A stretch of DNA of 64,000 nucleotides. Origin: Carpediemonas membranifera BICM (Eukaryota; Protista; Fornicata). Numbering within the stretch: the first letter of the stretch is position 1; the number at the start of each line of letters is the position of its first letter. The translations under genes were made by a program, and so were the position numbers. The stretch covers positions 186,001 through 250,000 of the forward strand of contig JAHDYR010000002.1 of NCBI GenBank assembly GCA_019828565.1, read 5' to 3'. The notes under the pieces were generated by a model. That model ran no database searches, had not been told where the DNA came from, and saw only the letters and a program-made list of their open reading frames with translations. This document shows, in pieces, positions 13,057-44,988 of the stretch.

Positions 13057-13178
13057 TGTTGTGGGTCCTACCCAAAGTTACACAGATTTACGTTATATTT
13101 AATAGTCAAGGAGTTTCTCCTCGACACCCTTGTGTCGAGTCTTCTCCTCAGTAAAAGTTCAACACCCATTGAACCACA
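13057..13178 (+). repeat. Element B LTR (other copies 18389-18510, 23723-23846, 29550-29671, 30167-30288)
   Basis: Five near-identical copies; TATA-like TTATATTTAA, CTCGACAC/GTGTCGAG hairpin, AGTAAA, terminal GTTCAA/TTGAAC hairpin. Confidence 0.97.
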
Positions 13179-13199
13179 GTACTAGTACTACCAAAACAT

Positions 13200-17137: not shown

Positions 17138-17179
17138 AACTTCTCAACATCGAAGCTGTATCCTCGAGGAACAAACGAT

Positions 17180-18016: not shown

Positions 18017-18089
18017 CGTCAGGGTGCGAGTGATGCGTTCTGAGGCTTGCACGCGGTGACTATATAACCTCACGGTTGATGTTTGTTAC

Positions 18090-18320
18090 TTACAGATTGT
18101 CGGTGACCATGCGCTTGCGTCCACGATACTTCTGAGCGCGAAGGGAACGACAAACGGACGTATGGGCAACAATAAGTGGCCTAGCCAGATCGTCATCACC
18201 AAGTTCGGTGATTTTGGCACGAATTTCCTTCAGAACGGCCTCTACGGCTGTGTTGTCCGACATCAAATGAGTTGACGGCGACATATCCTGCACATTTCTC
18301 GGAAACGGTCGAAGGAACAA
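18090..18320 (-). CDS. Small antisense ORF of element B (helical, basic C-terminus); shifted at a T-run in copies 2/3
   Basis: MSDNTAVEAVLKEIRAKITELG...RGRKR; fills the gap upstream of the 278-aa ORF. Confidence 0.4.
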   Translation of the reverse strand: MFLRPFPRNVQDMSPSTHLMSDNTAVEAVLKEIRAKITELGDDDLARPLIVAHTSVCRSLRAQKYRGRKRMVTDNL

Positions 18321-18531
18321 CTAACAAGGTCATCTTAGTCTTCAAGCATGCATTTATTGTCGGTAATAAGGCATTAGGAGCTTCCTAGTGTTGTGGGTCC
18401 TACCCAAAGTTACACAGATTTACGTTATATTTAATAGTCAAGGAGTTTCTCCTCGACACCCTTGTGTCGAGTCTTCTCCTCAGTAAAAGTTCAACACCCA
18501 TTGAACCACAGTACTAGTACTACCAAAACAT

Positions 18532-21500
18532 ATGGGTACGGAAACTTACAGAAGCCTGAAGAAGAATCCGCCTCTCCTGAAGAAGTCCTCCATGGACGCT
18601 CTTTTGGACTTTGCGGATAACCTCCACGATCATCGCGCCTTAGGCGGCCGCGATGATGTTATTGACCTCATCGAGCCTAGCATAGCAGAGCTAGCAGGCC
18701 TTAACGACGACGAAGAGGTTGAAGACACTCCTCTCCTGCTCTCCGCGAAGCTCCGTAAGAAACGTCGTGTCGCAGCCCAAGATGAACGAGTCCTCAAGCG
18801 CCTCGGTGCTGCCCTTCGACCTTCTCGCCCGAGCATGCGTCTACAGCTCTTCCGAGTCCCCGCCAAGTCCTTCGAGCCTGATGAGGTTGCTCGAGTGAAC
18901 CGCCGATTCAATCTGCTCTTGAAGCTCGTTCAACCCGAAGATCCCGAGGACGTCTTGAAGGAGACGTACAGCCGCTGCTTCAAGTTCCCCAACAACAGTC
19001 GCATCATGTATCGAGTCAGAGAATCAACGGAGCGCAAGGATCTCAAGGACGCAATGGCTGATGTCCTCGTCATGTCACGCGACCTCAAGGAGTCCAAGGA
19101 GATGATCGCTTCCTTCGGCGCTGCGGGGGTCTCCGACTCACAGCGTACCAACACCACGCCCTCCCATACACGGCACACGGGGAGCGGTCCGAAGAACCCT
19201 CATCGACGCGAGCCTGACCGCACGAACGTAGCCCCCTCAAAAGGCAAGCCGATCGACAAGCCCAAGCACGAGAAGAAGCCATTCGTGTGCTTCAACTGCG
19301 GTAAGGTCGGTCACTCCGCTCGCCGATGCCCTGCTCCGAAGACAACCTGTTCCAAGTGCCAGAAGCCGGGCCACCGAGCTGAATTCTGCCGTTCTGAGGT
19401 AAATTCAGCTCGTTGTGTGTTTTCTCTCGGTTCCCGTCAGAGTGTCCTCCCCTCCGTCAAGGCTAGCATTCTTAAGCAAGTCGTGTCCGTCCTGTTCGAC
19501 TCGGGCGCTGACTGCGCAACCATTGACCCCAAGCTCTGCCACGGCAAGGCAGTGAAGTGGATCTCACACGAGAAGACACTTATCGAGACAGTGGGCGGCG
19601 TCAGAGAGGCCGATGGTCAGGTATCCTTCCGCCTCGTCTTAGCGCCCTCGCCATTCACTCCGCGCGGATGCTCTATCACTATTAAGGCCTACGTCCTGTC
19701 GACCGCTTTCGATGTATGCCTGGGTTACCCTCAGATGGTGGAGATCGGCCTTCTCCCTTCGTTGTCTGAGCCTACCAGCGAGCTCGCAGCCAGCGACGAA
19801 CCACCTACATTCGAGAAGTACGTCGCGCAAGCCAGAGCCATGTCCTCTTCCTTTTCTCAGAGGCAGGCCGACATCCTCAAGCGTTACGCCCGGACATTCG
19901 TGGACCGTACCGAGCCAAGCCGGCTCGAACCGTATGATTTGGTCCTCAAGGGCGACAGAGTCGTACACATTCGGCCGTACTATGTTCCCCCGCCGAAAGT
20001 CCCGATCATTCAAGAGCACATTAATACGCTCCTGGCAAAGCGCTACATCGAGGCATGCCAGTCTCAATACGCGAGCCCTACCATCATAGTTCCAAAGAAG
20101 GGGGGAAAGACGCGTTTTGTCGTCGACTTCCGCGAGATCAATCAACTAACGGAACCATTCGACTACCCCATCCCTCGCATAGACGAAGTTCTCACTCAAC
20201 TGTCCGGAAAGTCTGTGTTCGCTACCCTAGACTTGTCAGCAGGATACCATCAGATCCCTCTTTCTGAACGGTGCCGTCACCTAACCGCCTTCCGTACTGT
20301 TTTTGGTCAATACCAATATACACGGATGCCCTTCGGCTTACGTAACGCCGGAGCGTACTTCCAGAGGGCGATGGAAGACGGGTTCAAGGGTCTGGTGGGC
20401 TCCGCCTGTGTCATATACATTGATGACATCATCGTCATGGGTGCGGATGAGGACGAGTACCTGGGAAACCTCGAAAAAGTCATGCAACGCGTTGACAAGC
20501 TTAACCTTCAGCTCGGCCGAGATAAGTGCCAGTTCGGTCGGCAAGAGGTCGAGTTCCTCGGGTGGATCATATCCCAAGGCAGCGTGAAGATCTCACCCCA
20601 GCGGACCGAAGATATCGCGAACCTCAAGCTGTCTTCATCCACGAAGGGCATGCAGGGTCTCAACGGATTCCTCAACTATTTCCGCGATTACATACCCAAC
20701 TTCGCGGTCCGAGCTAAGCCTCTGCTAGACGCCATGTCCGGTCGGCAGACCCCCTCGAGACGTTCTTCAGAAGTCGCTGGACGATCTGAAACAAGCTTTA
20801 TGTTCGGCCGACGCTCTAGCCATGTTCGACGCGACTAAGCCTCACACTGTCATGACTGACGCATCCGATGTCGGGTACGGAGCAGTCTTACTCCAAGAGG
20901 GCCGACCAGTTTGCTATATGTCGCGTGCGTTCAACGACGTCCAGTCACGCTGGTGTACCGGTGAGAAAGAAGCCTACGCTATCGTCGCAGCGTTACAACG
21001 ATGGCGCAAGTTCCTGTGCTGGGAGAGCTTTACTATTCTCACGGATCACCGGAACCTACTCTATATGTACCGGTCCACCAACGCCAAGGTCCGCCGGTGG
21101 GCTGATTCGATCGCCGATTTAGATTTCACCCTACAGCACATCGCCGGTCTGGACAACGGTGGAGCCGACGGTCTCTCGAGAGTATTCTCCATGCAACAGG
21201 CGTCGAGGGATCAGGTATCCCGCGCTCATCTCACAGCAGGAGCTCATCTGTCTCGCCGGATGACAACCGAGCAACTTAGGGCCGACGGTTTGTCTGTCTC
21301 CCCGTCAAGTCGTAGACGACGTGATTACCGCGTGTCCAGAGTGCCAAGTCTTGGCCCGCCCTCCTGTTGATACGCCCGACGGCCTGCATACAGCTGTAGA
21401 CCTCCCGTTCCGGCGTGTGGCCATTGACACCATGGGTCCGCTACCGACGGTCAACGGCCTGTCCTACGTGACAGTAATGATCGACATGTGCTCCCGCTGG

Positions 21501-22469
21501 ACAGAGCTAGTCCCGGTCAACAGCACCTCAGCCAAAGACGCAGCCAACGCATTGGTCAACACCTGGATTCTACGATACGGATGCCCCGAAGTCGTCCAAT
21601 CGGATGGGGGCTCAGAGTTCAAAAACGCTCTGTTCAAACGCCTCTCCGAAGAGATGGGGTTCGACGTCCACATAACGACAGCATACCATCCCCAGAGCAA
21701 CGGTGTCGTCGAACGCGCGAACAAGGAGGTCGAACGCATCCTCAGAGCCAGGAAGCTGGAGTTAAGGAATAACGATTGGGTAGCACACCTACCAGTCGCC
21801 CAATTCTTGGTCAACTCAATGCCCAGGATCCCGACCCGGTTGACTCCGGCCGAGATCATGTTTGGCGCCAATTTATCAATACCGTCATCGATCTATATCA
21901 CGGATGCCGCCTCGGCTGGTCCGCCACAGTCGAAGCTAGCCGCAGCCGATGCCGCCATCCAACTCGCCAAAGCAAGGATTAGAGCCATGCGCGAAGACGC
22001 TCTCGCAAAGGCAACCTCATCGAGAAGCGAGATATTGAGCCGTTTCGTGCTGGTCAAATACTACCCAAGACCACCGAGCAAGCTAGCCCCGGGCTGGCGC
22101 GGCCCCATGAGGCGTGTCGCAGCCGTCAAACGTGATGGTGTTGTCGTCGCATATGAGGTCCAAGACCTCAGTCAGTCAGCGGACGGTCCAACTATCAAGG
22201 TAGACGCGGCACGTGTGCGAAGATTTGACCCAGGCAAGCTCTCGGAGCAACAGATCTATGACCTCGCAGCCGCTTCCGTCGATGAGTGGCATGTCGAGCG
22301 CATCTCACGCTCTAGAGGCTCGGGCCCCAAGTCAAGGCGCGAGTACCTCGTACACTGGGTCGGATTCGAGGATTCAGAGGCTTCATTCGAACCTTATTCG
22401 CACGTCAAAGATTTGGAAGCCCTCGATACATATTTGAAGTCTGACCAAGCCAAGCGTGACGGTCTGTAA
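18532..22469 (+). CDS. gag-pol: Element B gag-pol copy 2; frameshifts at ~20752 and ~21301
   Basis: Near-identical to copy 1. Confidence 0.9.
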
Positions 22470-23867
22470 AACTTCTCAACATCGAAGCTGTATCCTCGAG
22501 GAACAAACGATTTATTCAGAGCTAGATTCCTCGTCTTCCGTCTCCTCCGTGTCCGTCAGCTCGACCAACCAAGTCGGGTCAGCGTGGCGCTCAAGGGCGT
22601 TCTCAGCCAAGTACTCTCGCACACACCGGACAAGGCAGAGATCAGCGTTGAGGGACACGATGCTGAGTCCCGAGTATCCGTCATACTGCAGGATCAACAC
22701 AAAAGACCCGGGACCACAAGTCGTCTTCAGATACTCGTGACGGACTACGCACGTGACAGTGTAGTAGCGGTCCGGATCAGAGACCTGAAGCGGCTCCCCA
22801 GTGAGCCTCATCGCCAATGGCGGGCAGGTAGCCGTCGTGGCACAAGCGGCTGACCAGGGTTGCCCAGAAGTCGTTGGGAGCCGGGATGCGCCGGCTGATG
22901 CCGTAGACAGCGACACGGAAGTAGTCCGGTGCGAGGACGAGGACCAACAGGCGGTTAAGATATCCGCGCGCTGTAGTGTCCGACTTGACCCCGCCGGCAG
23001 TCCGCACAGCCGCCACGAGAGCTGCAGAGTAGTGACCATTACCGGGTGAAGACCCACCCAGCGTGATGTCGCGGCCCCGGATCGCGGCCGACACGATGTC
23101 GCCATCGGTCAAGCGCTTCTTGCCGAGCTTGAGGTGGGCCCTCACACCGGCAAGCGCGACCTGGCAGTGAGCCACGAGAGCCAAGACCTGCTGGGTCAGC
23201 TTCACGTCCTGCACTACGGCTGCGTCGTTCAGACGACCTTGCTCAATAGCGTCAAAGATTCGCTGGAGCGGCAGCTCGATGGAGTTGGTGTAACCTTCCA
23301 GGCGTCGGGCAACCTCGGCCTTGATGTCGTGGGGCATCAGAGTCGTCATCGTCAGGGTGCGAGTGATGCGTTCTGAGGCTTGCACGCGGTGACTATATAA
23401 CCTCACGGTTGATGTTTGTTACTTACAGATTGTCGGTGACCATGCGCTTGCGTCCACGATACTTCTGAGCGCGAAGGGAACGACAAACGGACGTATGGGC
23501 AACAATAAGTGGCCTAGCCAGATCGTCATCACCAAGTTCGGTGATTTTTGGCACGAATTTCCTTCAGAACGGCCTCTACGGCTGTGTTGTCCGACATCAA
23601 ATGAGTTGACGGCGACATATCCTGCACATTTCTCGGAAACGGTCGAAGGAACAACTAACAAGGTCATCTTAGTCTTCAAGCATGCATTTATTGTCGGTAA
23701 TAAGGCATTAGGAGCTTCCTAGTGTTGTGGGTCCTACCCAAAGTTACACAGATTTACGTTATATTTAATAGTCAAGGAGTTTCTCCTCGACACCCTTGTG
23801 TCGAGTCTTCTCCCTCAGTAAAAAGTTCAACACCCATTGAACCACAGTACTAGTACTACCAAAACAT

Positions 23868-26800
23868 ATGGGTACGGAAACTTACAGAAGCCTGAAGAAG
23901 AATCCGCCTCTCCTGAAGAAGTCCTCCATGGACGCTCTTTTTGGACTTTGCGGATAACCTCCACGATCATCGCGCCTTAGGCGGCCGCGATGATGTTATT
24001 GACCTCATCGAGCCTAGCATAGCAGAGCTAGCAGGCCTTAACGACGACGAAGAGGTTGAAGACACTCCTCTCCTGCTCTCCGCGAAGCTCCGTAAGAAAC
24101 GTCGTGTCGCAGCCCAAGATGAACGAGTCCTCAAGCGCCTCGGTGCTGCCCTTCGACCTTCTCGCCCGAGCATGCGTCTACAGCTCTTCCGAGTCCCCGC
24201 CAAGTCCTTCGAGCCTGATGAGGTTGCTCGAGTGAACCGCCGATTCAATCTGCTCTTGAAGCTCGTTCAACCCGAAGATCCCGAGGACGTCTTGAAGGAG
24301 ACGTACAGCCGCTGCTTCAAGTTCCCCAACAACAGTCGCATCATGTATCGAGTCAGAGAATCAACGGAGCGCAAGGATCTCAAGGACGCAATGGCTGATG
24401 TCCTCGTCATGTCACGCGACCTCAAGGAGTCCAAGGAGATGATCGCTTCCTTCGGCGCTGCGGGGGTCTCCGACTCACAGCGTACCAACACCACGCCCTC
24501 CCATACACGGCACACGGGGAGCGGTCCGAAGAACCCTCATCGACGCGAGCCTGACCGCACGAACGTAGCCCCCTCAAAAGGCAAGCCGATCGACAAGCCC
24601 AAGCACGAGAAGAAGCCATTCGTGTGCTTCAACTGCGGTAAGGTCGGTCACTCCGCTCGCCGATGCCCTGCTCCGAAGACAACCTGTTCCAAGTGCCAGA
24701 AGCCGGGCCACCGAGCTGAATTCTGCCGTTCTGAGGTAAATTCAGCTCGTTGTGTGTTTTCTCTCGGTTCCCGTCAGAGTGTCCTCCCCTCCGTCAAGGC
24801 TAGCATTCTTAAGCAAGTCGTGTCCGTCCTGTTCGACTCGGGCGCTGACTGCGCAACCATTGACCCCAAGCTCTGCCACGGCAAGGCAGTGAAGTGGATC
24901 TCACACGAGAAGACACTTATCGAGACAGTGGGCGGCGTCAGAGAGGCCGATGGTCAGGTATCCTTCCGCCTCGTCTTAGCGCCCTCGCCATTCACTCCGC
25001 GCGGATGCTCTATCACTATTAAGGCCTACGTCCTGTCGACCGCTTTCGATGTATGCCTGGGTTACCCTCAGATGGTGGAGATCGGCCTTCTCCCTTCGTT
25101 GTCTGAGCCTACCAGCGAGCTCGCAGCCAGCGACGAACCACCTACATTCGAGAAGTACGTCGCGCAAGCCAGAGCCATGTCCTCTTCCTTTTCTCAGAGG
25201 CAGGCCGACATCCTCAAGCGTTACGCCCGGACATTCGTGGACCGTACCGAGCCAAGCCGGCTCGAACCGTATGATTTGGTCCTCAAGGGCGACAGAGTCG
25301 TACACATTCGGCCGTACTATGTTCCCCCGCCGAAAGTCCCGATCATTCAAGAGCACATTAATACGCTCCTGGCAAAGCGCTACATCGAGGCATGCCAGTC
25401 TCAATACGCGAGCCCTACCATCATAGTTCCAAAGAAGGGGGGGAAAGACGCGTTTTGTCGTCGACTTCCGCGAGATCAATCAACTAACGGAACCATTCGA
25501 CTACCCCATCCCTCGCATAGACGAAGTTCTCACTCAACTGTCCGGAAAGTCTGTGTTCGCTACCCTAGACTTGTCAGCAGGATACCATCAGATCCCTCTT
25601 TCTGAACGGTGCCGTCACCTAACCGCCTTCCGTACTGTTTTTGGTCAATACCAATATACACGGATGCCCTTCGGCTTACGTAACGCCGGAGCGTACTTCC
25701 AGAGGGCGATGGAAGACGGGTTCAAGGGTCTGGTGGGCTCCGCCTGTGTCATATACATTGATGACATCATCGTCATGGGTGCGGATGAGGACGAGTACCT
25801 GGGAAACCTCGAAAAAGTCATGCAACGCGTTGACAAGCTTAACCTTCAGCTCGGCCGAGATAAGTGCCAGTTCGGTCGGCAAGAGGTCGAGTTCCTCGGG
25901 TGGATCATATCCCAAGGCAGCGTGAAGATCTCACCCCAGCGGACCGAAGATATCGCGAACCTCAAGCTGTCTTCATCCACGAAGGGCATGCAGGGTCTCA
26001 ACGGATTCCTCAACTATTTCCGCGATTACATACCCAACTTCGCGGTCCGAGCTAAGCCTCTGCTAGACGCCATGTCCGGTCGGCAGACCCCCTCGAGACG
26101 TTCTTCAGAAGTCGCTGGACGATCTGAAACAAGCTTTATGTTCGGCCGACGCTCTAGCCATGTTCGACGCGACTAAGCCTCACACTGTCATGACTGACGC
26201 ATCCGATGTCGGGTACGGAGCAGTCTTACTCCAAGAGGGCCGACCAGTTTGCTATATGTCGCGTGCGTTCAACGACGTCCAGTCACGCTGGTGTACCGGT
26301 GAGAAAGAAGCCTACGCTATCGTCGCAGCGTTACAACGATGGCGCAAGTTCCTGTGCTGGGAGAGCTTTACTATTCTCACGGATCACCGGAACCTACTCT
26401 ATATGTACCGGTCCACCAACGCCAAGGTCCGCCGGTGGGCTGATTCGATCGCCGATTTAGATTTCACCCTACAGCACATCGCCGGTCTGGACAACGGTGG
26501 AGCCGACGGTCTCTCGAGAGTATTCTCCATGCAACAGGCGTCGAGGGATCAGGTATCCCGCGCTCATCTCACAGCAGGAGCTCATCTGTCTCGCCGGATG
26601 ACAACCGAGCAACTTAGGGCCGACGGTTTGTCTGTCTCCCGTCAAGTCGTAGACGACGTGATTACCGCGTGTCCAGAGTGCCAAGTCTTGGCCCGCCCTC
26701 CTGTTGATACGCCCGACGGCCTGCATACAGCTGTAGACCTCCCGTTCCGGCGTGTGGCCATTGACACCATGGGTCCGCTACCGACGGTCAACGGCCTGTC

Positions 26801-27806
26801 CTACGTGACAGTAATGATCGACATGTGCTCCCGCTGGACAGAGCTAGTCCCGGTCAACAGCACCTCAGCCAAAGACGCAGCCAACGCATTGGTCAACACC
26901 TGGATTCTACGATACGGATGCCCCGAAGTCGTCCAATCGGATGGGGGCTCAGAGTTCAAAAACGCTCTGTTCAAACGCCTCTCCGAAGAGATGGGGTTCG
27001 ACGTCCACATAACGACAGCATACCATCCCCAGAGCAACGGTGTCGTCGAACGCGCGAACAAGGAGGTCGAACGCATCCTCAGAGCCAGGAAGCTGGAGTT
27101 AAGGAATAACGATTGGGTAGCACACCTACCAGTCGCCCAATTCTTGGTCAACTCAATGCCCAGGATCCCGACCCGGTTGACTCCGGCCGAGATCATGTTT
27201 GGCGCCAATTTATCAATACCGTCATCGATCTATATCACGGATGCCGCCTCGGCTGGTCCGCCACAGTCGAAGCTAGCCGCAGCCGATGCCGCCATCCAAC
27301 TCGCCAAAGCAAGGATTAGAGCCATGCGCGAAGACGCTCTCGCAAAGGCAACCTCATCGAGAAGCGAGATATTGAGCCGTTTCGTGCTGGTCAAATACTA
27401 CCCAAGACCACCGAGCAAGCTAGCCCCGGGCTGGCGCGGCCCCATGAGGCGTGTCGCAGCCGTCAAACGTGATGGTGTTGTCGTCGCATATGAGGTCCAA
27501 GACCTCAGTCAGTCAGCGGACGGTCCAACTATCAAGGTAGACGCGGCACGTGTGCGAAGATTTGACCCAGGCAAGCTCTCGGAGCAACAGATCTATGACC
27601 TCGCAGCCGCTTCCGTCGATGAGTGGCATGTCGAGCGCATCTCACGCTCTAGAGGCTCGGGCCCCAAGTCAAGGCGCGAGTACCTCGTACACTGGGTCGG
27701 ATTCGAGGATTCAGAGGCTTCATTCGAACCTTATTCGCACGTCAAAGATTTGGAAGCCCTCGATACATATTTGAAGTCTGACCAAGCCAAGCGTGACGGT
27801 CTGTAA
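23868..27806 (+). CDS. gag-pol: Element B gag-pol copy 3; frameshifts at ~23940, ~25440, ~26090
   Basis: Near-identical to copy 2. Confidence 0.9.
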
Positions 27807-30292
27807 AACTTCTCAACATCGAAGCTGTATCCTCGAGGAACAAACGATTTATTCAGAGCTAGATTCCTCGTCTTCCGTCTCCTCCGTGTCCGTCAGCTCG
27901 ACCAACCAAGTCGGGTCAGCGTGGCGCTCAAGGGCGTTCTCAGCCAAGTACTCTCGCACACACCGGACAAGGCAGAGATCAGCGTTGAGGGACACGATGC
28001 TGAGTCCCGAGTATCCGTCATACTGCAGGATCAACACAAAAGACCCGGGACCACAAGTCGTCTTCAGATACTCGTGACGGACTACGCACGTGACAGTGTA
28101 GTAGCGGTCCGGATCAGAGACCTGAAGCGGCTCCCAGTGAGCCTCATCGCCAATGGCGGGCAGGTAGCCGTCGTGGCACAAGCGGCTGACCAGGGTTGCC
28201 CAGAAGTCGTTGGGAGCCGGGATGCGCCGGCTGATGCCGTAGACAGCGACACGGAAGTAGTCCGGTGCGAGGACGAGGACCAACAGGCGGTTAAGATATC
28301 CGCGCGCTGTAGTGTCCGACTTGACCCCGCCGGCAGTCCGCACAGCCGCCACGAGAGCTGCAGAGTAGTGACCATTACCGGGTGAAGACCCACCCAGCGT
28401 GATGTCGCGGCCCCGGATCGCGGCCGACACGATGTCGCCATCGGTCAAGCGCTTCTTGCCGAGCTTGAGGTGGGCCCTCACACCGGCAAGCGCGACCTGG
28501 CAGTGAGCCACGAGAGCCAAGACCTGCTGGGTCAGCTTCACGTCCTGCACTACGGCTGCGTCGTTCAGACGACCTTGCTCAATAGCGTCAAAGATTCGCT
28601 GGAGCGGCAGCTCGATGGAGTTGGTGTAACCTTCCAGGCGTCGGGCAACCTCGGCCTTGATGTCGTGGGGCATCAGAGTCGTCATCGTCAGGGTGCGAGT
28701 GATGCGTTCTGAGGCTTGCACGCGGTGACTATATAACCTCACGGTTGATGTTTGTTACTTACAGATTGTCGGTGACCATGCGCTTGCGTCCACGATACTT
28801 CTGAGCGCGAAGGGAACGACAAACGGACGTATGGGCAACAATAAGTGGCCTAGCCAGATCGTCATCACCAAGTTCGGTGATTTTTGGCACGAATTTCCTT
28901 CAGAACGGCCTCTACGGCTGTGTTGTCCGACATCAAATGAGTTGACGGCGACATATCCTGCACATTTCTCGGAAACGGTCGAAGGAACAACTAACAAGGT
29001 CATCTTAGTCTTCAAGCATGCATTTATTGTCGGTAATAAGGCATTAGGAGCTTCCTAGTGCTCCTTCCGGTCAGTTTGATGTTGTTATTCAAGTACAGTT
29101 GGACGCAGAAAATTAGAAGCCTCAGAACTCCTCAACGGAGCCGAATTGGAGCTTCTAAGTACGTTTTTCGGCGTCTGTGTGATTATGAGCGATAAGGGCT
29201 CAGCATTGGCAGTGTTTGCTAGAGCAATCGTTCTTGGCCTTCGAATTACATGGAATGGCATATAACACGTATAAGGTTTGTGAAGACGGCCTAGGAAGGC
29301 CGTGGAGGGGCAGTGGTAAGCCTCTCCGTCACGTTTCACCATTTTTGAAACAGAGCTCACATAGCGGTACCGCAGTTAGATCATGATACCATCATTTTGA
29401 TTTCGTTCAGCTAGATGCGAAAGCACTCAGGCCATGGGGTTGCCAGCCCTATGAGTCACCGTTGGCGGTCGGGTGGCACCGTCCAGGCCTTTGGTGAAAT
29501 GCTGACGTCAAGTCTCTCTGTCATGCCTATACCAGGCATGGAGGGGCAGTGTTGTGGGTCCTACCCAAAGTTACACAGATTTACGTTATATTTAATAGTC
29601 AAGGAGTTTCTCCTCGACACCCTTGTGTCGAGTCTTCTCCTCAGTAAAAGTTCAACACCCATTGAACCACACTAGTGCTCCTTCCGGTCAGTTTGATGTT
29701 GTTATTCAAGTACAGTTGGACGCAGAAAATTAGAAGCCTCAGAACTCCTCAACGGAGCCGAATTGGAGCTTCTAAGTACGTTTTTCGGCGTCTGTGTGAT
29801 TATGAGCGATAAGGGCTCAGCATTGGCAGTGTTTGCTAGAGCAATCGTTCTTGGCCTTCGAATTACATGGAATGGCATATAACACGTATAAGGTTTGTGA
29901 AGACGGCCTAGGAAGGCCGTGGAGGGGCAGTGGTAAGCCTTTCCGTCACGTTTCACCATTTTTGAAACAGAGCTCACATAGCGGTACCGCAGTTAGATCA
30001 TGATACCATCATTTTGATTTCGTTCAGCTAGATGCGAAAGCACTCAGGCCATGGGGTTGCCAGCCCTATGAGTCACCGTTGGCGGTCGGGTGGCACCGTC
30101 CAGGCCTTTGGTGAAATGCTGACGTCAAGTCTCTCTGTCATGCCTATACCAGGCATGGAGGGGCAGTGTTGTGGGTCCTACCCAAAGTTACACAGATTTA
30201 CGTTATATTTAATAGTCAAGGAGTTTCTCCTCGACACCCTTGTGTCGAGTCTTCTCCTCAGTAAAAGTTCAACACCCATTGAACCACAACTC

Positions 30293-32119
30293 CTCGTAGT
30301 CGTCAGGTGTTACAAACGCCGTCATAGCTCTGTCTTCCTCGTGGAGGGGCATCTGATGGTACCCGGACGTCAAGTCCAAGCTGGCGAAGAATTGAGCCCC
30401 CGCCGCCTCCTGCACGAAGGTTTTCAAGTCGGGAAGGGGAAAATGGTCACGAATGGTGAGAATGTTGAGCTTTGTGTAGTCCACACAGAGGCGTATGGCG
30501 CCGTTCTTCTTATCCACTACCACGATCGGGGAGGAGAACGGTCCGACGCTGTTCCTGGTGATGCCAAGGTGGCGTAGGCGGGTTACTTCTTCCCGCACCT
30601 GAAGGCGTCGTTCCCCTGATAGTCTCCGGGCTCGTTCCTGGACCAGGGCGTCCGGGTCATTCAATCGGATCCGCATAGGTTCAACCTTGGCTCCTTGAGC
30701 CGGAATGGGGCCGAACAACGTGGAATACTCAGCAAGTAGCGCTCGTACCTCGCTTCGGAGCGTGGCGCTCGCGGATTCGGGAATTTCAACAGCACCAACG
30801 TCCTCCGAGACGTCTAACTGGTTCAAACTCAGCGGAATGTCGTCCCCGTCCTCCTTGCTCAGATTTTCGGCTACGAGCTGGAGGAATAAGGAATCCTTCG
30901 TAAGAAGCCCGAGTACACGAAGAATGTCGGTGCCAATAAGGATTTTCTCGCGGTCCCCACTGAGGATTGCGAACTTCGCCTTAAACCGCGTTGGGGCTCC
31001 CGCCAGCGTGAGGTGTAACCAAGCCTCAGTATAGTGGTTAGTTGTCGAAATGGAACCGTTCGCCATTCTGAAGCGGAGGGTCGGGCCGGTCACTGTCTGT
31101 AGGCCAAGGGCCTCTGCTGACGCAGCGGAGATGATAGATTTTGGTGCTCCAGTGTCAATAATAAAGGAATACTCTTGGTCGTTTATACGACCAGACACTT
31201 TGAGTGGCTCATCGGGGTCCGTGTCCAGGAGATTAGCCTCGATTGGCTCCTTCTTCTTCGGGTTGGACCGGAGGCCGCCTCCTTCTTGGCGAGAGCGCAT
31301 TGGGGCCCCATTGGGGCACTGATTATCCCAATGCCATCCGCCGCACTTGCCACAGGCACGATGGGGAGGTTTCAAAGCTGGGTTGACGTCGTTCGGCTTG
31401 AGAGTGGAAGACTTCTCCGGGGCCCCTGAGGCAACTGCGCCCGGGACCGGGAGGCGAGGCGGTTGGCCTCCTGCGGCCGTTCCTTTCTTTCGGGTGGAGG
31501 ACTTTCCGGCCTGGTAGTGACCAAAGCGAATGGCCTTAGCCCGAGCGTCGTCATCTTCTTGAGCGAGGGCAATGCTCAGCTCGTATGCATCGGCAAGTGA
31601 CTTCCTCTTAGGATGCTCCTTGAGTTCAAAGTCCAGGACCTTGCGGAAAGTGGATGGGCGGATCCCCTGAAGGAAGATCTTACGCGCGTTCTTCTCAAAG
31701 GGGGAAATGTCTTCTTCGTCCTCTTCTTGTTCCTCTTCGTCCTCGTCCGAGTCGGACTCTTCGATGTCTTCGGCCTTAGAGAAAACTGCTGAGAACGCGC
31801 TGACGTACGCGCGAATGGAGGTGATTCTTTTTTCAGATACCTGGCAGGTGACGGCCTCGAGCTCTTTGACAAGGGACAATTTGTCCACCGGAGCAAGGAA
31901 CTTGCTGACGTATTCGTCAATCTTGTCGTCATTTGCCTTCGCCAGGTCTACGTTGAGAGTGTCCTCGATGATGTCCTGCAGGTCATTGGGGAGGAGGACA
32001 GCCAGCTTGGCGGCGGGATACAACGCCTTGATTCGGGCGGCATCCCTCTTAAATGAGCGCCAGGTTTCGCTAGTCAATGTCTCAACGCTCAGAGTCGGCA
32101 GAGAAATATTACCGAACAT
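30293..32119 (-). CDS. gag-pol: Element A gag-protease-RT N-terminal part (joins 13056-10777 to give one 1368-aa ORF)
   Basis: CGKCGGWHWDNQC knuckle, IIDTGA protease, RLCVDY, LDLTSGYHQ; removing B and one TSD restores DDYEE-FNRVPFGL. Confidence 0.95.
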
Positions 32120-32249: not shown

Positions 32250-33165
32250 AGAGCGACGGTTCTGGGCGGCATCTTGGTTCTCGCTCCAGCAGAAACTAGG
32301 AATGCGGCAGCTTTGGACGCGCACATTGGGATGTTGGAGCCATCCGGCCGCGGATTGATCACAGTTGGTTTGACGCGGTAGTGCTTGTACTGTTCCTCCT
32401 TGAACTTGACTTCCTTGTCCACCGGCATGGTGTTACCGACCGTGACATCGATCACCAGTGGGTATCCGCGTTCGGGTCCAGGACGAATAGGTCCGCTGTT
32501 CTCCGGGTGAGCTTCTTGGGCGCCGGGGCGTTAAAGTGCACTGCAGGTTCGGTGTTGTCGTTTGTTGTTCTCTGCAGGGCCATTGTTCCCGTGCGGCCGG
32601 TTTGGACACTTTCCTCGAATGCTCGTCGTCGTTCAACTAGCTCTTTCCCTGATTGTGTGAGGAGGGAATCCGGGAGCCGTACCTCCTTGTCGGACGGTGT
32701 GATCAGTCCTGGGCGGAGCAGGGCCGTTGTGGAGTCGAGGACCTTGTTGTGCACGAACGTCATCCTGTTCCCCGGGCCTTTGTTGCATGATCTGAGGTGG
32801 TCCAACAGGCTTTGTTGCGTCTCGCCGACAGTTCTGTCACAGAGGGGGCACTTGCCGTCTGGGATGGTATGGCCAATGTCTAGGCCAGCTGCGATTCTTA
32901 GTCCAGCCCATGCGCTTCTCGCCGATACTATGCTGAGGTCAGGCGTACCGATCAACAGGCTGGTCCAGGTTGCCGTGTGTGGGGTTGTGTGGTTGTGGGT
33001 GGCGTATAGTTCCTTCATCCCGTTCGCCTGTCTCTTGCTTCTGTCTGGTTCCGCCCAGTTGTTCCCTATGGTGTCCTCCTTGGGGTGAGGGCTGTGGGGC
33101 CTCGATGCCGGGGCGTTGATGCCGGTCGCCAACAGGGAATCTCGGGCCCCCAGGTATGCAGCTGT

Positions 33166-35055
33166 TCACTGGTCCACAGGGTCTTGGAAGCCGAGGCCGC
33201 CATCCGATATCTTAGAGAAGATGCGGCTGGTTTCAACCCCTTGTCCGAGGGTCGCACCCACGAATGTGATGTAAGCGTCCCTGATCCGTGCTGCTGCGCT
33301 GGCCATTGGCGGGGTCGTGCGGAATGCGAAGTTCAGCGTCGGGGCTGTGCATGTACGCACGAGAGTCTGCGCCGCCCACACTGCTTCATATAGGTCGGTC
33401 CCACTGGGCATGAGTGCGTTGGCTATGCCCCTCAGTTCGCTCTCGAAGGTTGTGGCGATGTTCGCAGCGTGGTTGGCAAGGAAGGCGGGGGGGCCTACCG
33501 GCACGCCCACCACAACCGCCTGGTGAATGCAGCGTGGGTCCGACTTGTGCAGTATCTTGGTCTTCCTCGGTTGGAGCTTGAGGTTAATACTCACTCCGAC
33601 CTCCTCGTCTCGCTTAATCTCCATGATGGCGTCGTCGTGTGAGGTCCACGCTGACACAAGGTCGTCCAGCAAGGCAACTCTTTCGCCCGGCGCTCTCTCT
33701 TCTAGCTCGTCCATGGCAGAGCGCATCGCCAGGGAGAAGAGGACTGGCCCCATTGGGTCTCCCTGCTGGACTCCTTCCTGGCAGCTCACCGTCTGGTCAC
33801 CCGTCGCCGTGTGGTAAGTCATTGTAGTCGGAGTGCCGTATGCGATGTCGAAGTAAGGCAACGCAGACGGGGCGTATAGCGAGACCATAGTGCGGATGAC
33901 CCTCCTGTCTACGGTGTTGAAGGCGTTAGTGTAGTCCGTTAGCACCACGTACTTCCCGGCGTTGTACGCCTTCCAGACGAAGTCCCCTACCGACTCAGCC
34001 GAGCAAGGGTCTCCGATGCCGCATTGGTTCGGCAGGCGGTCGTATTCGCCCTTCTTGAGGTCCTTAGCTAAGGCAGTCGCGAGGCATGACCCTGCCAGTC
34101 GGCGGAAGGTCTCCCCCAGGCCGATGGGTCGGAGCTTCTCGCCACTCGGTATCAGCTCAAGGATTGCATCGCTCATGAAGGCGGTCGCTCTGTGACCCTC
34201 GAGGAAGAGGTTGCAGATTCTCAAAACGCCGTATGTGAAGGGTCGTCCCAGGGTCGTCTTCAGCTCCTTGACGAGCTTGGGCGACCAGCCGGAAGGGCCG
34301 CCAGCTGACGAGATGTCGAGGCGGTCAATCGCCTTTTCGAGGTCGGTTATCCCCATCTGGAAGCAGAGCAGGGGGCGTGGTTGGCCTGTTGTGACTCGCG
34401 CCGATGTGGTGCTAGGCACGGCTGGTGTATCGCGAGTGGCCGGTGCTGGGTACAATCTCTCAGCTTGGGAGATGAGGTCCTCTGGGGCGGTGTGTCTAGG
34501 TTCACTCCGCAGCTTCTGGCGGGCCTTGCCAGCGAGACCCGAGACCGCCAGTTCGACCGCCTTTGCTGCCTTGCCCTGCTCAGGTGCCGTGCCTGCTGTG
34601 AGGAGTAGTTGGCTTGTGGGGTCAATCTCGCCCCTCGCTACCTCCCCCATCAGGTCCCTCATAGGCTTAGTGATAGCCAGTGGTACGAGGGCGCGGGGCA
34701 ATGCAAGCATCCCCCTCATGGCTTGCTCGGCGACGGCTGCGTCGATGTTCGCCAGGGCCGTTTTAAGCATGAGGTCCAGGTTGCACCACTGTGTTAGGAA
34801 GGCCCTCGCGCCTGCCGGGGAGACAGTCTGTCTGCTGATGACCTTAGCTGCGACGACGCCCCCTCCCGGGAGCAGGTCCGGGGCTGGCAGGGGGTCGAGG
34901 GTCAGTGGGTTCAGTGTTGCTACGGGTGGGGCAAGTGGGGCAGGTGGTGGGGGTGGTAGGCTTTGGGTTATCGCAGCTGCTGGGGCTGGGGCGCGTTGTT
35001 CCGCTTCCACAGTGCGGGCTCTTTTTGACTCGGTCGCCCGACTGACTTGGACCAT
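33166..35055 (-). pseudogene. Reverse transcriptase portion of the non-LTR ORF, ending at a premature in-frame TGA
   Basis: 629-aa ORF; the same frame continues after TGA 33166-33168 into ORF 32452-33132; further 1-nt frameshift at ~32455. Confidence 0.85.
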
Positions 35056-35234: not shown

Positions 35235-36377
35235 TCACACCGAAGAAACCTCCGGCGGAACAATGACGAGCCCCACCCCGCCCACTGGGGGGGACTGCGT
35301 CGAAACTCTCTCCCCCTCAACTGTACCAGGCGGCGTGCTTACCCCCGCCTCTTCACAACCGCTGCTCGCTGAGTACTCAGAGTACTCGACCGATGGGTAG
35401 GCCTGGTTTCCGACCTCACTGTCGCCCTCTGCACGTGTGGTCTCAACAATGTCCAACGAGGTGCCAATAGGACCGTCCTCACAGCCAGTGGCGGTGAGCT
35501 CGGTCTGGCGCGTGTTTGGGCGATCATCAGTCGATTTCTCGATGAGCAGTTCACTTGTAGCTGGGGTATTAAGTCGAGATCCGATTTCAGTAAATACCTC
35601 TACAACTGTAGCAATGGTCGGCTTCTCGGTCGCCCAGGTCGATATATCGTCCTCGGTGAACCTCTTAGCGTCCAGTTGCTTGCCGAGTCGGCTCAAAGCA
35701 TGCTTGACTTGACGGAGCTCATTGTTCGCCTTGATCGCGACTGGATCCTTCTTCTCGCGTACTTTCTTTCGAGCTGGAGGTACGAGGAGTTCAAAAACGA
35801 GGCATACAACAACGCCGATGACCGTGCCGAGGAGACAAGACTCATGGGCAATGGGATCTTGAAACACAGCGATGTGAATGATTGTGAGGATGATCGCCTG
35901 GGCTCCAAAGACTCGAATTGGGTGTGCGTTGAGTTCCTTGAACGCTAGCATGGCTACAAAACAAGCGAGGAGGTCTGCTACGTAATGCCAGAGGAGAGAC
36001 CAAATTCTTGAGCTGCCATGTGTGTCAATGACCCAGAAAGAGCCCCGGCCGACAGCGACACAGGAGATATAGGCGAGCGCACGAATGGGATTGTGTATGA
36101 CGTATCGGTAAACGATTCCTGGGATCTCAAAAGGCTTCCACTGGTGGCGGTGGATGTTGTTGGTGCGCCAGTAGATGAACTTGACAATGAAGATGCCGAG
36201 CACGGCTGACCATATATCGCCAACAGTGGAGTCTGCAAGCTCCTCAAGGGCCACAGAACTGTCGAACTCTTTGGCAATGCTGAATGAAAAAGCCTCAAGT
36301 GACTCCCACATGTAGGCTAAGAGAAGAACGAGGACCCAGGAGTTCGTGAAGTACATGAGAACGACGTTGTTCCACAA
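35235..36377 (-). CDS. Multi-pass membrane protein with low-complexity C-terminal tail; 5' end uncertain
   Basis: Five to six hydrophobic segments in the first 200 aa. Confidence 0.7.
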   Translation of the reverse strand: MWNNVVLMYFTNSWVLVLLLAYMWESLEAFSFSIAKEFDSSVALEELADSTVGDIWSAVLGIFIVKFIYWRTNNIHRHQWKPFEIPGIVYRYVIHNPIRALAYISCVAVGRGSFWVIDTHGSSRIWSLLWHYVADLLACFVAMLAFKELNAHPIRVFGAQAIILTIIHIAVFQDPIAHESCLLGTVIGVVVCLVFELLVPPARKKVREKKDPVAIKANNELRQVKHALSRLGKQLDAKRFTEDDISTWATEKPTIATVVEVFTEIGSRLNTPATSELLIEKSTDDRPNTRQTELTATGCEDGPIGTSLDIVETTRAEGDSEVGNQAYPSVEYSEYSASSGCEEAGVSTPPGTVEGERVSTQSPPVGGVGLVIVPPEVSSV

Positions 36378-37095
36378 GTGTTCTGGATAAGTGATGAATG
36401 GTCGATTACTGCCAGTCAGAAGGGAGATGCTGGTAGATAATCGGACGTGGACAAACCAAGAGGCCAGGCGCTCACTTCGAAAAAGAAAGAAAACGAACCG
36501 AAATCAAGGTAGTTCTGAGCAGCCATGGAGGTCTGGAAACTACCCTTTTGATGGCAAAACTAACACGGTTTGCTCTGCAAAAGACTCAGTGAAAGTCGAT
36601 CACAAATATCGAGTTGGACACGTATGGTTGGTGATGAAAGCGTGGGCTAGGAGACTTGGGAGATGGAGTGGGTGCCAACTGACCTGCTTTCAATTTTCCG
36701 ATTATGTCAGATTGTAAGACGATCATGATTGTATCCAGGATTTCGACTCAAACATGTGGAGGCTATGCTAAGTCAAGCGCGGTTACGTATATAGAAGGCT
36801 GATGTCAGTTCTGCCTTTCCGCGATTTGCAGGTGGCGATCGATATTCAAATTGATTTGTGGATTTGGATGATCCCATGCGATTTTGTACAAATCATTGGG
36901 CGCTACGTGCGACTATTCGTTAGCCGTATGTCACCTGGCGCCAATATTACCACAGCTGCTGTGCTCGAGAGACACGGTCACCGGGAATAAATAAATCGTC
37001 ACGAATCATCCTTTTAAAGTGCTGCCTTCATACAAAATCTCCGAGAACAACACGAGTCTCTCAGAACAACCACTACAAACACCGTCACACCACTC

Positions 37096-38368
37096 TCAAT
37101 GCGGCAACAGGCGCCCCACAAAGCCCCTGACCATAACCCCGAGCCCCTCGTCCAGCCCCTCTGCCATCTGAACCAGCGCCTGCTCATCCATACTAGCACT
37201 GTATCGCCCAGTCGCGTGTCGATCAACCATCCCTCTAGACACCAAGCTCTCGAGCACTTGGCCCAGTGAGGAGGCGCTGAATAGGGGGACGACTGCAATA
37301 CCAGGGTCGGCGACCTGGGTGCCGAGGTGGAGGAAGATGTTGTAGAGCCGATCAATTGATGAATGAATTACTCGGCGGTGGGTGTTGATAGATATTTGGA
37401 CTGCTTTGCGCTTACCGACGTTTTGGTTGACAAAAAGCTTGGAATCGTTTCCTTCCATGCATATGGTAGCTACTGCTACTGTAACAAGCGCTAGCTTCTC
37501 AAACGGCTTAAGGAACCCTGCTGGTGAAACATCAGCTTCAAAGGGAAGATCACGAATAATCAGACTGCCGCCTGCAAACATAATCGAGTAGAGCAACACA
37601 CCCTTGTCGTGGCTAGACATAGACGGAAGGATTGACTGGATAGCAAGGTCAGACACAGCCACGGGCGTGTGATGTGCCGTGACATAAACTGCGATGTCAC
37701 GTGTGAGTCGCATGAGCGGTCCGAAGTCAAACGTACCTCCGAGCCAGCGAACCATCGTTGAGGCAAACTCTGAAACAACCGGGAGGGTCCATTCCTTGGT
37801 CGCCGGTTCACAATTCAGCAGAGTATGTTGTATCATGAGTCGGAGAGATTCCACAGACCTAGATGGGATGGTGACAACCTGCTCATACGGCAGGGTGTCT
37901 GCCTTGTAGTTTGTGATGTGAACAATCTTTGATTTGGTCGATTTTCTGAGGAGGCGCGAGATCATGAGCGCTTCTTCATCTGGCACGTCATCGTCCAGGA
38001 TAAACACAAATGGTAGACTGTACGGGTTGCCTTCTAGCAGGTCAAAGAGTCTCCCCAGGCAAGACACAGTGGATGAGCGAACTCGGTAGATCGGGGGGGT
38101 GCGTACCAGGACAAGACGACGAAGACGCTTGGCAAGAGAGACTACGGTGCTGGGGGTGTCATCTAAGCAGAGAAGAGACCTGTTCACGTGAACAGTGGGG
38201 TAGCGAAGGCGCTCAAGAGCCTGGTTCACGAGTGTCTTCCTTCCAGACAGCCTCTGGCCAGCAACAGCACAAACTGAGCAATCCTATGTGAAATAGCTGA
38301 CATGTACATACCCTTAGTGCATCTATGAGATCAGAGAGCTGGGAATCGTAGATTACTGGCCAAGACAT
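37096..38368 (-). CDS. ORC5: Divergent AAA+/winged-helix protein, Orc5-like (414 aa); intron 38284-38311
   Basis: Spliced N-terminus MSWPVIYDSQLSDLIDALR-DCSVCAVAGQRLSGRKTLVNQALERLRYPTVHVN; Walker-B-like FVFILDD; C-terminal K(LALV)...D..LF...IDRLYNIF...LESLV...RY pattern typical of Orc5. Confidence 0.7.
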
Positions 38369-38562
38369 GCTTTGGCTTGCTGAAATACGCATAGCGGGCA
38401 ACGACCAAGAATAAGAGCTGAAAAACTGCGAAACTTTGTTGAAGTGCTGCATATGCCGCAGACACGCCCATTAGCCTAACAACCCGGCCGATAAAGAGTC
38501 TTATGTTCCATGGGTCGGTCCTTAAATCGCAAAATTCACCAAAAATCTCAACCACCGACCAA

Positions 38563-41519: not shown

Positions 41520-43439
41520 TCAAAGCTCGTCGTGCGTGTAATCATCGCCGCCCTGCTCGGCGTAGACCTTGGCGACAATGGGGTTCGTCACCTTCTCGAG
41601 CTCGGCCGTCTTCTCCTGGTACTCCTCAGCGGAGGCCTCGGGGTTGCTGTCGAGCCAGGCGAGGGTCTCCTTGACGGCCTCAAGGATGGTCTCCTTGTCA
41701 TCCTCGGCAAGCTTGTCGCCAAGCTTGTCGTCGTCGGTAACCTGCTGCTTATACTGGTACGCGAGGCCCTCGAGGTTGTTCCTGGCCTGGACGCGCTCCC
41801 TGATGACCTTATCCTCCTCCTCGTGTGCCTGCGCCTCCTCTACAAGGCGGTCGATCTCGTCCTTCGAAAGACGGCCGGCCTCGTGCTTGATGACGACGTG
41901 GTTAGTGTTGCCAGTGCCCTTGTCGAGGGCCGAGACGGTAAGGATGCCGTCGCTGTCAATCTCGAACGTTACTTCAATCTGGGGGACGCCGCGCTGAGCC
42001 GGGGGAATTCCGGTCAGGTCGAACTCCCCGAGCTCGTGGTTGTCCGCAGTCATTGCCCGCTCGCCCTCAAAGACCTGGATGCGGACAGAGGGCTGGTTAT
42101 CGGCCGCCGTGGTGAAGATCTGCTCGCGCTTGCACGGGATTGAGGTGCCGCGCTCGACGATCTTGGTCATGACGCCGCCGGTGGTCTCGATGCCGAGCGT
42201 GAGGGGGTTAATGTCGATGAGGAGGGCGCGCTTCTCGTCGCCAGAGAGGATGGCACCCTGGACGGCAGCACCATAGGCGACGGCCTCGTCGGGGTTGATG
42301 GACTTGTGGAGCTCCTTGCCGTTGAAGAAGTCAGACAGCATCTGCTGCACCTTGGGGATGCGGGTCGACCCGCCGACGAGTACAACCTCGTCAATCTCGG
42401 ACTTGCGGAGGCCAGAGTCCTTGAGAACCTGCTTCACAGGCTCAAGGGTCTTCTTAAAGAGATCAGCGTTGAGGTCCTCGAACTTGGCGCGGGTGAGGGT
42501 CTCAGAGAAGTCGATGCCAGCCATGATGGACTCAATCTCGATGGTGGTACGCATCTGGGTTGACAGAGTGCGCTTGGCCTTCTCAATCTCGCGGCGGAGG
42601 CGCTGGATGGCGCGGGGGGAGGCGCGGAGGTCCTTGTCGTGCTTAGCCTTAAACTGCCCGACCATGTAGTCCATAACGCGCTGGTCGAAGTCCTCACCGC
42701 CGAGGTGAGTGTCGCCAGAGGTGGCGATGGCCTCGAAGACGCCGTCGATGATGTTGAGGACGGAGACATCGAAGGTTCCGCCACCGAGATCAAAGACGAG
42801 GATGTTGCGCTCGTCCTCCTTGTTGAGGCCGTATGCGATGGCAGCGGCAGTGGGCTCGTTGATCATGCGGACGACGTCCAGACCGGCGATGCGGCCGGCG
42901 TCCTTGGTGGCTGAGCGCTGGGCGTTGTTGAAGTAGGCGGGCACGGTAACAACGGCCTTCTCGACGGGCTCGCCAAGGTAGTCTTCGGCGATCTGCTTCA
43001 TCTTTGTGAGGACGATGGCAGAGATCTCCTCGGGGGACATGAGCTTGTCCTCGCCCTTGACCTGAGCCTTGATGTAGGGCTTGCTGTCGTGCTCGACAAT
43101 CTTGAAGGGGAGGAGCTTCTTGTCGCGCTGGACCTCGGGGTCGGAGAACTCGCGACCGATGAGGCGCTTGACGTCAAAGATGGTGTTGAGGGGGTTGGAG
43201 GCGGACATGGTCTTGGCAGCGTCGCCAGCAACACGCTCAGTCTCCGTAAAGGAGACGAAGGATGGAGTAATACGGTTGCCAAGGTCATTGGCAATGATTT
43301 CAACATGGCCGTCCTTCTGGACGGCAACACAGGAGTATGTCGTGCCAAGATCGATGCCAATGATCGTCTCAGCGGCCACAAGGGCAAGGATGGAAGAAAT
43401 AATAAGTAATCTCGTCAAAGGAGAGGAAGGGAGAACCAT
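41520..43439 (-). CDS. BiP: ER Hsp70 chaperone BiP/GRP78
   Basis: Signal peptide, [18 protein letters not shown]-terminal HDEL. Confidence 0.98.
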
Positions 43440-44361
43440 TACGATGATTCGCTTATCTGTCGGATGACTGAAACAACATGCTTACGGCTGATGACGTGTG
43501 CAAGAAAATTTAACGATCGTTAAATTCATGAAGCCCTGGTGACGAGGACTCTATTCGAAGGCTGCTTGGGGGTTGACGGACTCTCGTGGCGCCCGCAGTT
43601 TACCATGGCGGTGTTGGCAAGAATCACTCATGACAATTTTCCTAACATTTCGTCGGCAGGAGTCGGGCAACCAACCAATCATGGCATCAGTTCGGTTTAA
43701 AACCCATAGTGTGTGTTTTCCCATCATTACCGCCAATCATTGCCTCCTTCCTTCCTTGCTACGTCTAGATTATTTGATTCTGACCGAATCAACGTTCACC
43801 AAGCCGCATCTACCGTTTCTCATGAGAAACGGGAAATGACCAGTCGATCACACCTTTATCTTGTCAGAAGTATGTCCGGCATCAGCTTGACAGGGAGCTA
43901 TTGACGAAGTGAGACTGAGTCAATCATTTTGATCCGCACAAAATCGAGATCATATTTCCGATGTCGGTTTATACTGGGATATGATGTCTCGGGGAATGAT
44001 AAAGAAGCCATTAATGCCCAAGTTGCCAAGGTCTGTTTGGTGGTCAGTGTGACATTGGACCGGAGAATCAAAGAATCTGGTCGCGGCAGTGAGTGTTTAA
44101 AAGTCGTTTCAAGATGGGCATACGTTATTATAGGCACATGAGTTGCAAATAGGGCAGGCTGACATTTCACGCGGGGAAATAGGCCTGGTCAAGGTTAGTA
44201 GCGCAGACCACCTGGAATCTCGGAGTTGAGCCCACAACATACTTTGTAGTGAATTGGTTCGTGAGCCTCGGCGAGGTGGGCGCATGACTGCGAATCAGGT
44301 AGATCTTTCTTGCGAGATTACAGGAAATAGATCCCGCATAATTTCGAGTGCGATATTGCTG

Positions 44362-44988
44362 ATGGCGGAAGCAAACGCTTTAGCAGCGAATGCCGCGCCT
44401 TCTGCCACGAGCCTAGATGTACCAGCTATCGCTATGCAACCTAGCGCGGTTTCCGCAGTACCGATGCCTGCGCCAGCAGTTTCAGCCCCCGTCATTGCGC
44501 AATCAACCGTTACTGCAGCTATTCCACCGCCCATTCAGCCTAAAGACGAACTTGATAGCCAAGACGCCCCAATCAAGAAGGGGAAACATCGGCGTCCACG
44601 GATTCGCTGGTCTCCGCAACTCCACGATGCATTTGAGAAGGCAGTGCTCAAGCTAGGCGTGAAATCTGCCCAGCCCCGGTACATACAAGCAGAAATGGAG
44701 GCGATGGGCGTTGAAGGCCTCTCTCGCGAATCGATTGCATCGCATTTGCAAAAGTTCCGCCAAAACATTGTCCAAATGCACGGGCTTTCCAACACGGAGC
44801 AGCTCACAGATCAGCACGGGGCCGTCCTTGGCGGTACCGTTCCTGCTGCCACAACTCATACGGCGCCCGTGCCTGAGCGGGCCTCGTTCCAAACGGCCGA
44901 GGTTGACGGGTGGTTGAGGTCCCGACTTGGTAAGATTAAGGAGCCGAACGCTGTCGTTAGAGACCCGGATAGAGATGAGCGTTCTTGA
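44362..44988 (+). CDS. GARP/SHAQKYF-class Myb-like DNA-binding protein (start uncertain)
   Basis: RPRIRWSPQLHDAFEKAV..LG...A.P..I...M.VEGLSRESIASHLQKFR. Confidence 0.92.
   Translation: MAEANALAANAAPSATSLDVPAIAMQPSAVSAVPMPAPAVSAPVIAQSTVTAAIPPPIQPKDELDSQDAPIKKGKHRRPRIRWSPQLHDAFEKAVLKLGVKSAQPRYIQAEMEAMGVEGLSRESIASHLQKFRQNIVQMHGLSNTEQLTDQHGAVLGGTVPAATTHTAPVPERASFQTAEVDGWLRSRLGKIKEPNAVVRDPDRDERS

Follow-up and report, generated by a model that had tools for sequence, protein, structure and literature searches.

In the human ORC, Orc5 is placed between Orc4 and Orc3, binds ATP without a partner arginine finger and donates R143 to the Orc4 site, with ATP hydrolysis confined to the Orc1/Orc4 site (PMC5291709). 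Hydrolysis does not depend on the ATP site of Orc5, and yeast Orc5 Walker A mutants proliferate (PMC5291709). In Trypanosoma brucei, Tb7980 is a putative Orc5 that was recognised through structural modelling only (PMC4889932). Among metamonads, the PMC8516963 supplements list Orc5 in Kipferlia (g11559), Trichomonas (TVAG_080150/399280) and Monocercomonoides (MONOS_4655), and give Kipferlia, a relative of Carpediemonas, both Orc5 and Orc4. Carpediemonas membranifera itself was published without any ORC subunit or Cdc6 (Salas-Leiva et al., PMC8516963), and has become the standard example of a eukaryote lacking both. A model of recombination-driven, origin-independent replication rests on this loss (PMC8516963). 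The original prediction had stated that Carpediemonas was reported to lack recognisable ORC subunits and had guessed, correctly, at such a host; that claim is indeed in the literature, and in 2025 it was still being cited for undiscovered MCM-loading mechanisms (PMC12440816, PMC12759066). All six MCM genes are reported in the organism (PMC12440816).

A stretch of 64,000 nucleotides of C. membranifera contig JAHDYR010000002.1, positions 186,001-250,000 (the window), carries an Orc5-like gene on its minus strand at 37096-38368, with the ATG at 38368 and the TGA at 37096. Exon 1 has 57 nt, and the intron at 38311-38284 begins with GTATGT, ends with CATAG and is of the GT..AG type. Read without splicing, the frame meets a stop after 51 codons. 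The gene is laid out as follows.

38312..38368, minus strand: exon 1, 19 codons; the public J8273_0875 has the same N-terminus
38284..38311, minus strand: spliceosomal intron, phase 0, 28 nt, absent from the contigs of two runs
37096..38283, minus strand: exon 2, 395 codons and stop; Orc5-like, with a predicted AAA+-like domain, lid and winged-helix region at the C-terminus
37004..38367, minus strand: longest spliced transcript contig

Removal of the intron had been predicted to give a 414-aa protein, and the sequence and the transcript contigs agree: contigs from two runs of one sample lack exactly 28 letters at 38283, the outcome that an RNA-seq check of the intron should give. The spliced contigs cover 37004-38367 and 37150-38358, and depth is zero at 36755-36905. 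That the two runs are RNA is our guess, but contigs that are spliced and confined to the gene, together with depth dropping to zero, are the pattern expected of RNA. An identical 414-aa spliced protein is already in the public annotation as hypothetical protein J8273_0875. It begins with MSWP, four residues before the start that had been quoted. A search of the assembly finds the gene once. The J8273_0875 gene is thus intact, single-copy, spliced and transcribed, and its host-gene neighbours (for example BiP), together with the splicing, transcription and intact frame, rule out a contaminant or a pseudogene. Judged from its position, exon 1 would form the helix that precedes the P-loop strand.

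The surroundings of the gene hold several further features. It stands head to head, with about 200 bp between (38369-38562), with a tubulin-tyrosine-ligase-like gene (PF03133, 38503-40167, plus strand). Transcript contigs of this gene start at 38541 and 38574, which makes the ATG at 38563 a possible start codon in place of that at 38503. A transcript contig reveals a 74-nt GT..AG intron at 36383-36456 on the minus strand, linking the membrane-protein ORF 35235-36377 to an exon upstream of it. The minus-strand region 32452-35055 encodes a reverse transcriptase (RVT_1, E 4.8e-10, ORF 33166-35055), and after it comes a second ORF in which a Cys/His finger stands alongside a motif reminiscent of restriction-type endonucleases; the two ORFs probably make up a single split non-LTR retroelement of the CRE/R2 type. 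A truncated LTR retrotransposon ORF (30269-32119, minus strand; Gag-like, aspartic protease and the start of an RT) adjoins 5.3-kb tandem repeats at about 13000-29000. An intronless BiP/Hsp70 gene with a signal peptide and a C-terminal HDEL lies at 41520-43439 on the minus strand. A Myb-like protein is encoded at 44254-44988 on the plus strand; its PF00249 match is weak, and with its SHLQKF motif it resembles GARP/SHAQKYF-class factors, a class best known from plants and Dictyostelium.

Conventional searches do not recognise the protein. Exon 2, with 395 of the 414 residues, was the query for all homology, profile and fold work, and the genome searched was the C. membranifera assembly (24.2 Mb, 69 contigs). 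Pfam assigns exon 2 to no family at E values up to 5, its scores for ORC5_C, ORC5_lid and AAA_16 are below the curated cut-offs, and a search of the whole genome with the PF14630 (ORC5_C) profile matches nothing, J8273_0875 included. No match was found in a sequence search of the PDB. Across 1.84 billion representative proteins phmmer matched J8273_0875 to itself only, and neither a word-index homologue search with the whole of exon 2 or its C-terminal part nor a metagenome scan with exon 2 found anything beyond it. Since the searches return J8273_0875 itself or nothing, it has no close orthologue among the sequences covered and offers no natural alignment. Against Orc5, hhalign gives a probability of 2.8% and an E value of 0.016, and identity to the Orc5 consensus is 16%. 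The failure of such searches accounts for the published absence of ORC. It had been proposed that the gene is missed unless the intron is spliced, but this did not hold: the public annotation already contains the spliced protein, and exon 2 by itself is an open frame with the Walker A and everything downstream, so the intron was rejected as what hid the gene. It is sequence divergence below HMM thresholds that hid it.

Language-model features place exon 2 among Orc5 proteins. In the ESM Atlas its recognition value is 2905 (threshold 2300), and it matches ORC5_C clusters best (0.96; 222-228 of 256 features in common), in a calibration in which about one in 100 shuffled proteins attains 0.95. 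Among the 30 matches listed, the first family other than Orc5 is Orc4 (0.91) at rank 19, followed by Cdc6 (0.90) at rank 24. Residues 1-240 of exon 2, which leave out the C-terminal domain and are part of a protein where the calibration covers whole proteins, again match Orc5 best (0.92, 187 features); Cdc6/Orc1-type AAA+ clusters come next, none of them above 0.90 or 160 features. Its motifs being in register as well, this half appears to comprise an AAA+ domain of the initiator clade and a lid.

Profile comparison gave a second view. The reference set of 46 Orc5 sequences was assembled without J8273_0875 and is mostly animal and fungal, with a few other eukaryotes. It was drawn from metagenome loci found with a short degenerate pattern, which we take to be an Orc5 motif, and verified with Pfam, and then from named homologues; the vertebrate-like loci L032, L047 and L082, unnamed Logan proteins and a primate entry were kept out of the profile. 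In one metagenome contig (L061:61-1836, minus strand), the Orc5 ORF continues in frame into a Rab GTPase; this fusion is likely an assembly chimera, and its Rab part was excluded from the profile. In local mode the Orc5 HMM gives exon 2 3.1 bits, above 300 shuffles and below several P-loop proteins. End to end, exon 2 reaches -67.0 bits where shuffles (n=200) give -121.7 +/- 9.1, a z of 6.0, or 5.7 with shuffles in 10-residue windows, where z-values in these tests are not probabilities; the reversed sequence scores -94.9. Exon 2 also outscores all 58 real ORFs of the genome on this profile, RFC, proteasome and Cdc48-type ATPases included. Fourth by score among the decoys on the Orc5 profile is a 708-aa ORF (L009, G000:C23:163929-167102) that matches AAA_16 and has a P-loop whose context is NB-ARC/STAND-like.

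The alignment of exon 2 to the profile is colinear from the Walker A to the wing strand, and hydrophobic core columns are retained at 76%, against 61 +/- 5% in shuffles. By domain, the C-terminal part, whose boundary was set after the alignment had been inspected, reaches z 5.35, with Orc5-type motifs in order and spacing, while neither the AAA core (z 1.3) nor the lid (z -0.2) is significant when scored alone. Scored on the C-terminal profile, exon 2 (-7.2) leads the best of 1,085 real decoy ORF windows (-19.3) by 12 bits; true Orc5 proteins reach 210-275, the difference being a measure of how far J8273_0875 has drifted. Archaeal Orc1/Cdc6 proteins, which served as the control, reach z 3-7 on the whole Orc5 profile, but eight of them give only -0.7 to 0.8 on its C-terminal part, and exon 2 gives 1.8 on the archaeal Orc1/Cdc6 profile. 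This control agrees with the Atlas in setting exon 2 closer to Orc5, while the ranking among eukaryotic paralogues comes from the ESM features. The ESM features support the N-terminal half of the putative Orc5 and the profile its C-terminal half.

Every motif that had been quoted in support of an Orc5 call was found in J8273_0875. With residue numbers referring to the 414-aa protein, the motifs map as follows.

38233..38259, minus strand: non-canonical Walker A, GQRLSGRKT, residues 28-36 (profile alignment)
residues 49-53: HVN strand (profile alignment)
37990..38010, minus strand: Walker B strand FVFILDD, residues 111-117 (profile alignment; a strand in the single-sequence model too)
37942..37959, minus strand: residues 128-133, with Arg132 in the Orc5 arginine-finger column (one alignment)
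37831..37875, minus strand: strand-Pro-helix into the lid, residues 156-170, against Orc5 'hfpdYskdel' (profile alignment)
37465..37512, minus strand: first helix of the ORC5_C region, residues 277-292, against Orc5 'LPyyskyLLIAAYLAS'
37402..37446, minus strand: DSKLF and basic GKRKA, residues 299-313, against Orc5 'DkrfF' and basic loop
37333..37356, minus strand: IDRLYNIF, residues 329-336, against Orc5 'ldRllAIF'
37195..37209, minus strand: GRYSA, residues 378-382, against the Orc5 wing strand 'pkykc'

The Walker A is degenerate, as had been seen at the outset: R and K occupy the places of K and S/T/N, all 35 reference Orc5 Walker A motifs matched by the pattern are GK[S/T/N], and a canonical GxxxxGK[S/T] is absent from J8273_0875. 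Given that yeast growth tolerates loss of this motif, its degeneration lowers the prospect of ATP binding more than that of Orc5 membership. Arg132 falls in the column of human R143 in the profile alignment; MAFFT aligns the region differently. The D and F of the DSKLF segment are invariant columns (alignment A3).

Structure prediction had been proposed as a check, with Orc5 expected as the top hit. The single-sequence AlphaFold model has a pLDDT of 39.8. Shape searches with this low-confidence model by Foldseek, VIA-align and the Atlas gave no useful match; RFC and CTF18 rows were present but weak, at E values of about 0.02-0.04. Supplied with Orc5 sequences as the alignment, AlphaFold reached a pLDDT of 57 overall and of 76-90 around the Walker A and in the C-terminal helices. 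Foldseek then placed human ORC5 first (7jpo_E, E 1.7e-6, TM 0.22), a circular result, with ORC4 chains interleaved with ORC5 chains; the near-full-length rows in VIA-align were ORC5 and Cdc6/Orc1 chains. As this model is circular and its alignment misregistered (MAFFT misplaced the Walker B region in the AAA part), it speaks for compatibility and was not counted as support.

Based on the ESM features and the end-to-end profile, which held against shuffles, real decoys and the archaeal control, the original call of Orc5 stands, and J8273_0875 is very probably the C. membranifera Orc5 orthologue. Two other identities have to be weighed against it. A chance likeness to Orc5, in an unrelated orphan or in an AAA+-fold protein of another kind (an RFC/Rad17 relative, for example), is scarcely credible. 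Such a reading could draw on the complete lack of significant matches in conventional searches and on the RFC and CTF18 rows of the low-confidence model, yet two different methods agree on Orc5 for different halves of the protein, RFC families are absent among the Atlas matches listed for exon 2 and for residues 1-240, and the RFC-type ORFs of the genome fall below exon 2 on the Orc5 profile. Neither an RFC best match nor an intact Walker A is present to place the protein with RFC/Rad17. It is also very unlikely that J8273_0875 is a different paralogue of the ORC/Cdc6 clade, be it Orc4, an Orc1/Cdc6-like protein or a lineage-specific derivative. Orc4 and Cdc6 do come after Orc5 in the Atlas list, and ORC4 chains interleave with ORC5 even when the model is guided by Orc5; against this, Orc5 clusters hold all ranks above 19 of the 30 listed and come first for the N-terminal half, and both the order and the spacing of its C-terminal motifs agree with the Orc5 profile, which is not so for archaeal Orc1/Cdc6 proteins. 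Exon 2 is not matched by TIGR02928 and stays low on the archaeal profile, so neither test places it in Orc1/Cdc6. Even if another paralogue were at hand, the published total loss of ORC would be contradicted all the same.

If J8273_0875 is Orc5, it may nonetheless belong to a lineage that truly lost the Orc1/Cdc6 ATPase, in which case it would survive as part of a reduced sub-complex that serves something other than licensing (chromatin, centromere or segregation) and replication would start otherwise, for instance by the recombination route proposed in PMC8516963; we regard this as unlikely but far from negligible. The taxon-enriched HMMs of the 2021 study found no Orc1/Cdc6 (PMC8516963). Our own searches of the genome with PF14629, PF04084, PF07034, TIGR02928, AAA_16 and AAA_22 found no Orc1/Cdc6, Orc2, Orc3 or Orc4, and a codon-pattern search for the Orc4 motif GP[R/S]GxGK found no Orc4. 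Orc1/Cdc6 is usually the easiest ORC subunit to detect. The matches inspected with TIGR02928, AAA_16 and AAA_22 are RuvBL, proteasome, Cdc48, RFC and other ATPases, and the best TIGR02928 matches (E 1.6e-7), considered as Orc1/Cdc6, were rejected as RuvBL2 and RuvBL1. Several of these ATPases occur as near-identical pairs on different contigs (RuvBL2 L106/L107, RuvBL1 L108/L109, Cdc48 L118/L119, proteasome ATPase L007/L008), unlike the single-copy Orc5-like gene. The degenerate Walker A of J8273_0875 would also suit a complex that has lost its ATPase. Genome searches miss J8273_0875 too, however, so blanks for the other subunits carry little weight, and a full-length protein with a likely arginine finger points to an adjacent ATP-binding subunit. 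It is plausible that further ORC subunits are likewise hidden in Carpediemonas. An ORC of degenerate scaffold subunits only (Orc5, perhaps Orc3 and Orc4), with the Orc1/Cdc6 ATPase lost, that still loads MCM2-7 seems to us quite unlikely; if true, it would be a licensing machine minus its presumed core ATPase.

Most likely, Carpediemonas retains a very divergent ORC rather than none, and we consider it reasonably probable that the Orc5 orthologue is a working subunit of that complex. By comparison with other Orc5 proteins, it would sit between Orc4 and Orc3 in the ORC ring and have a structural role, hydrolysing no ATP itself, its AAA+-like and winged-helix domains packing onto the neighbouring subunits. 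Arg132 may serve to complete the nucleotide site of Orc4. The ATP site of J8273_0875 itself is probably inactive or altered. A drifting yet working Orc5 could combine, as here, a degenerate P-loop (GRK for GK[S/T]) with an apparently kept arginine finger. In the yeast structure a basic Orc5 loop contacts DNA, and the basic loop of J8273_0875 may do so as well. A ring containing J8273_0875 would help load MCM2-7.

The reported loss of ORC is therefore probably, at least in part, a failure of detection, as a single expressed Orc5 orthologue breaks the claim that all subunits are absent. J8273_0875 does not appear in the portion of the PMC8516963 supplements available to us, and our literature search, with most subscription journals outside its coverage, found no paper that calls it Orc5 or corrects the total loss. 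The gene now offers a named bait that makes testable whether Carpediemonas has a divergent canonical ORC or an ORC without Orc1/Cdc6. The doubt extends to other losses reported from this genome, such as that of the Ndc80 complex.

Compared with described systems, J8273_0875 would be a new, extremely divergent member of the known Orc5 family. Orc5 of human, fly and yeast combines AAA_16, ORC5_lid (PF21639) and ORC5_C (PF14630), and most references have about 435-460 residues against 414 here. Shared with them are the colinear Walker A, Walker B, putative arginine finger and lid entry, then the helix, the basic loop and the 'DRL..IF' motif of the C-terminal part, and the top ESM match. Unlike them, J8273_0875 is only about 16% identical and falls under every Pfam cut-off, has GRK instead of GK[S/T] in its Walker A, has the hallmark 'AAYLASYNP' eroded to 'VTVAVATIC', and has a lid without confident alignment. 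Archaeal Orc1/Cdc6 (TIGR02928) belongs to the same AAA+ initiator clade and also has a lid and winged helix, but with intact Walker motifs and no fit to the Orc5 C-terminal profile, and exon 2 in turn barely rises on theirs. Tb7980 provides the precedent for an Orc5 without ORC orthology in sequence searches (PMC4889932); it is, however, an Orc1/Cdc6 interactor with AAA+ homology in such searches, whereas J8273_0875 shows no such homology and no such partner is known in Carpediemonas. The Orc5 proteins of Kipferlia, Trichomonas and Monocercomonoides still match ORC5_C by HMM, which J8273_0875 does not. Given that Orc5 has been retained in these related lineages, vertical retention would be the simple history for the Carpediemonas gene.
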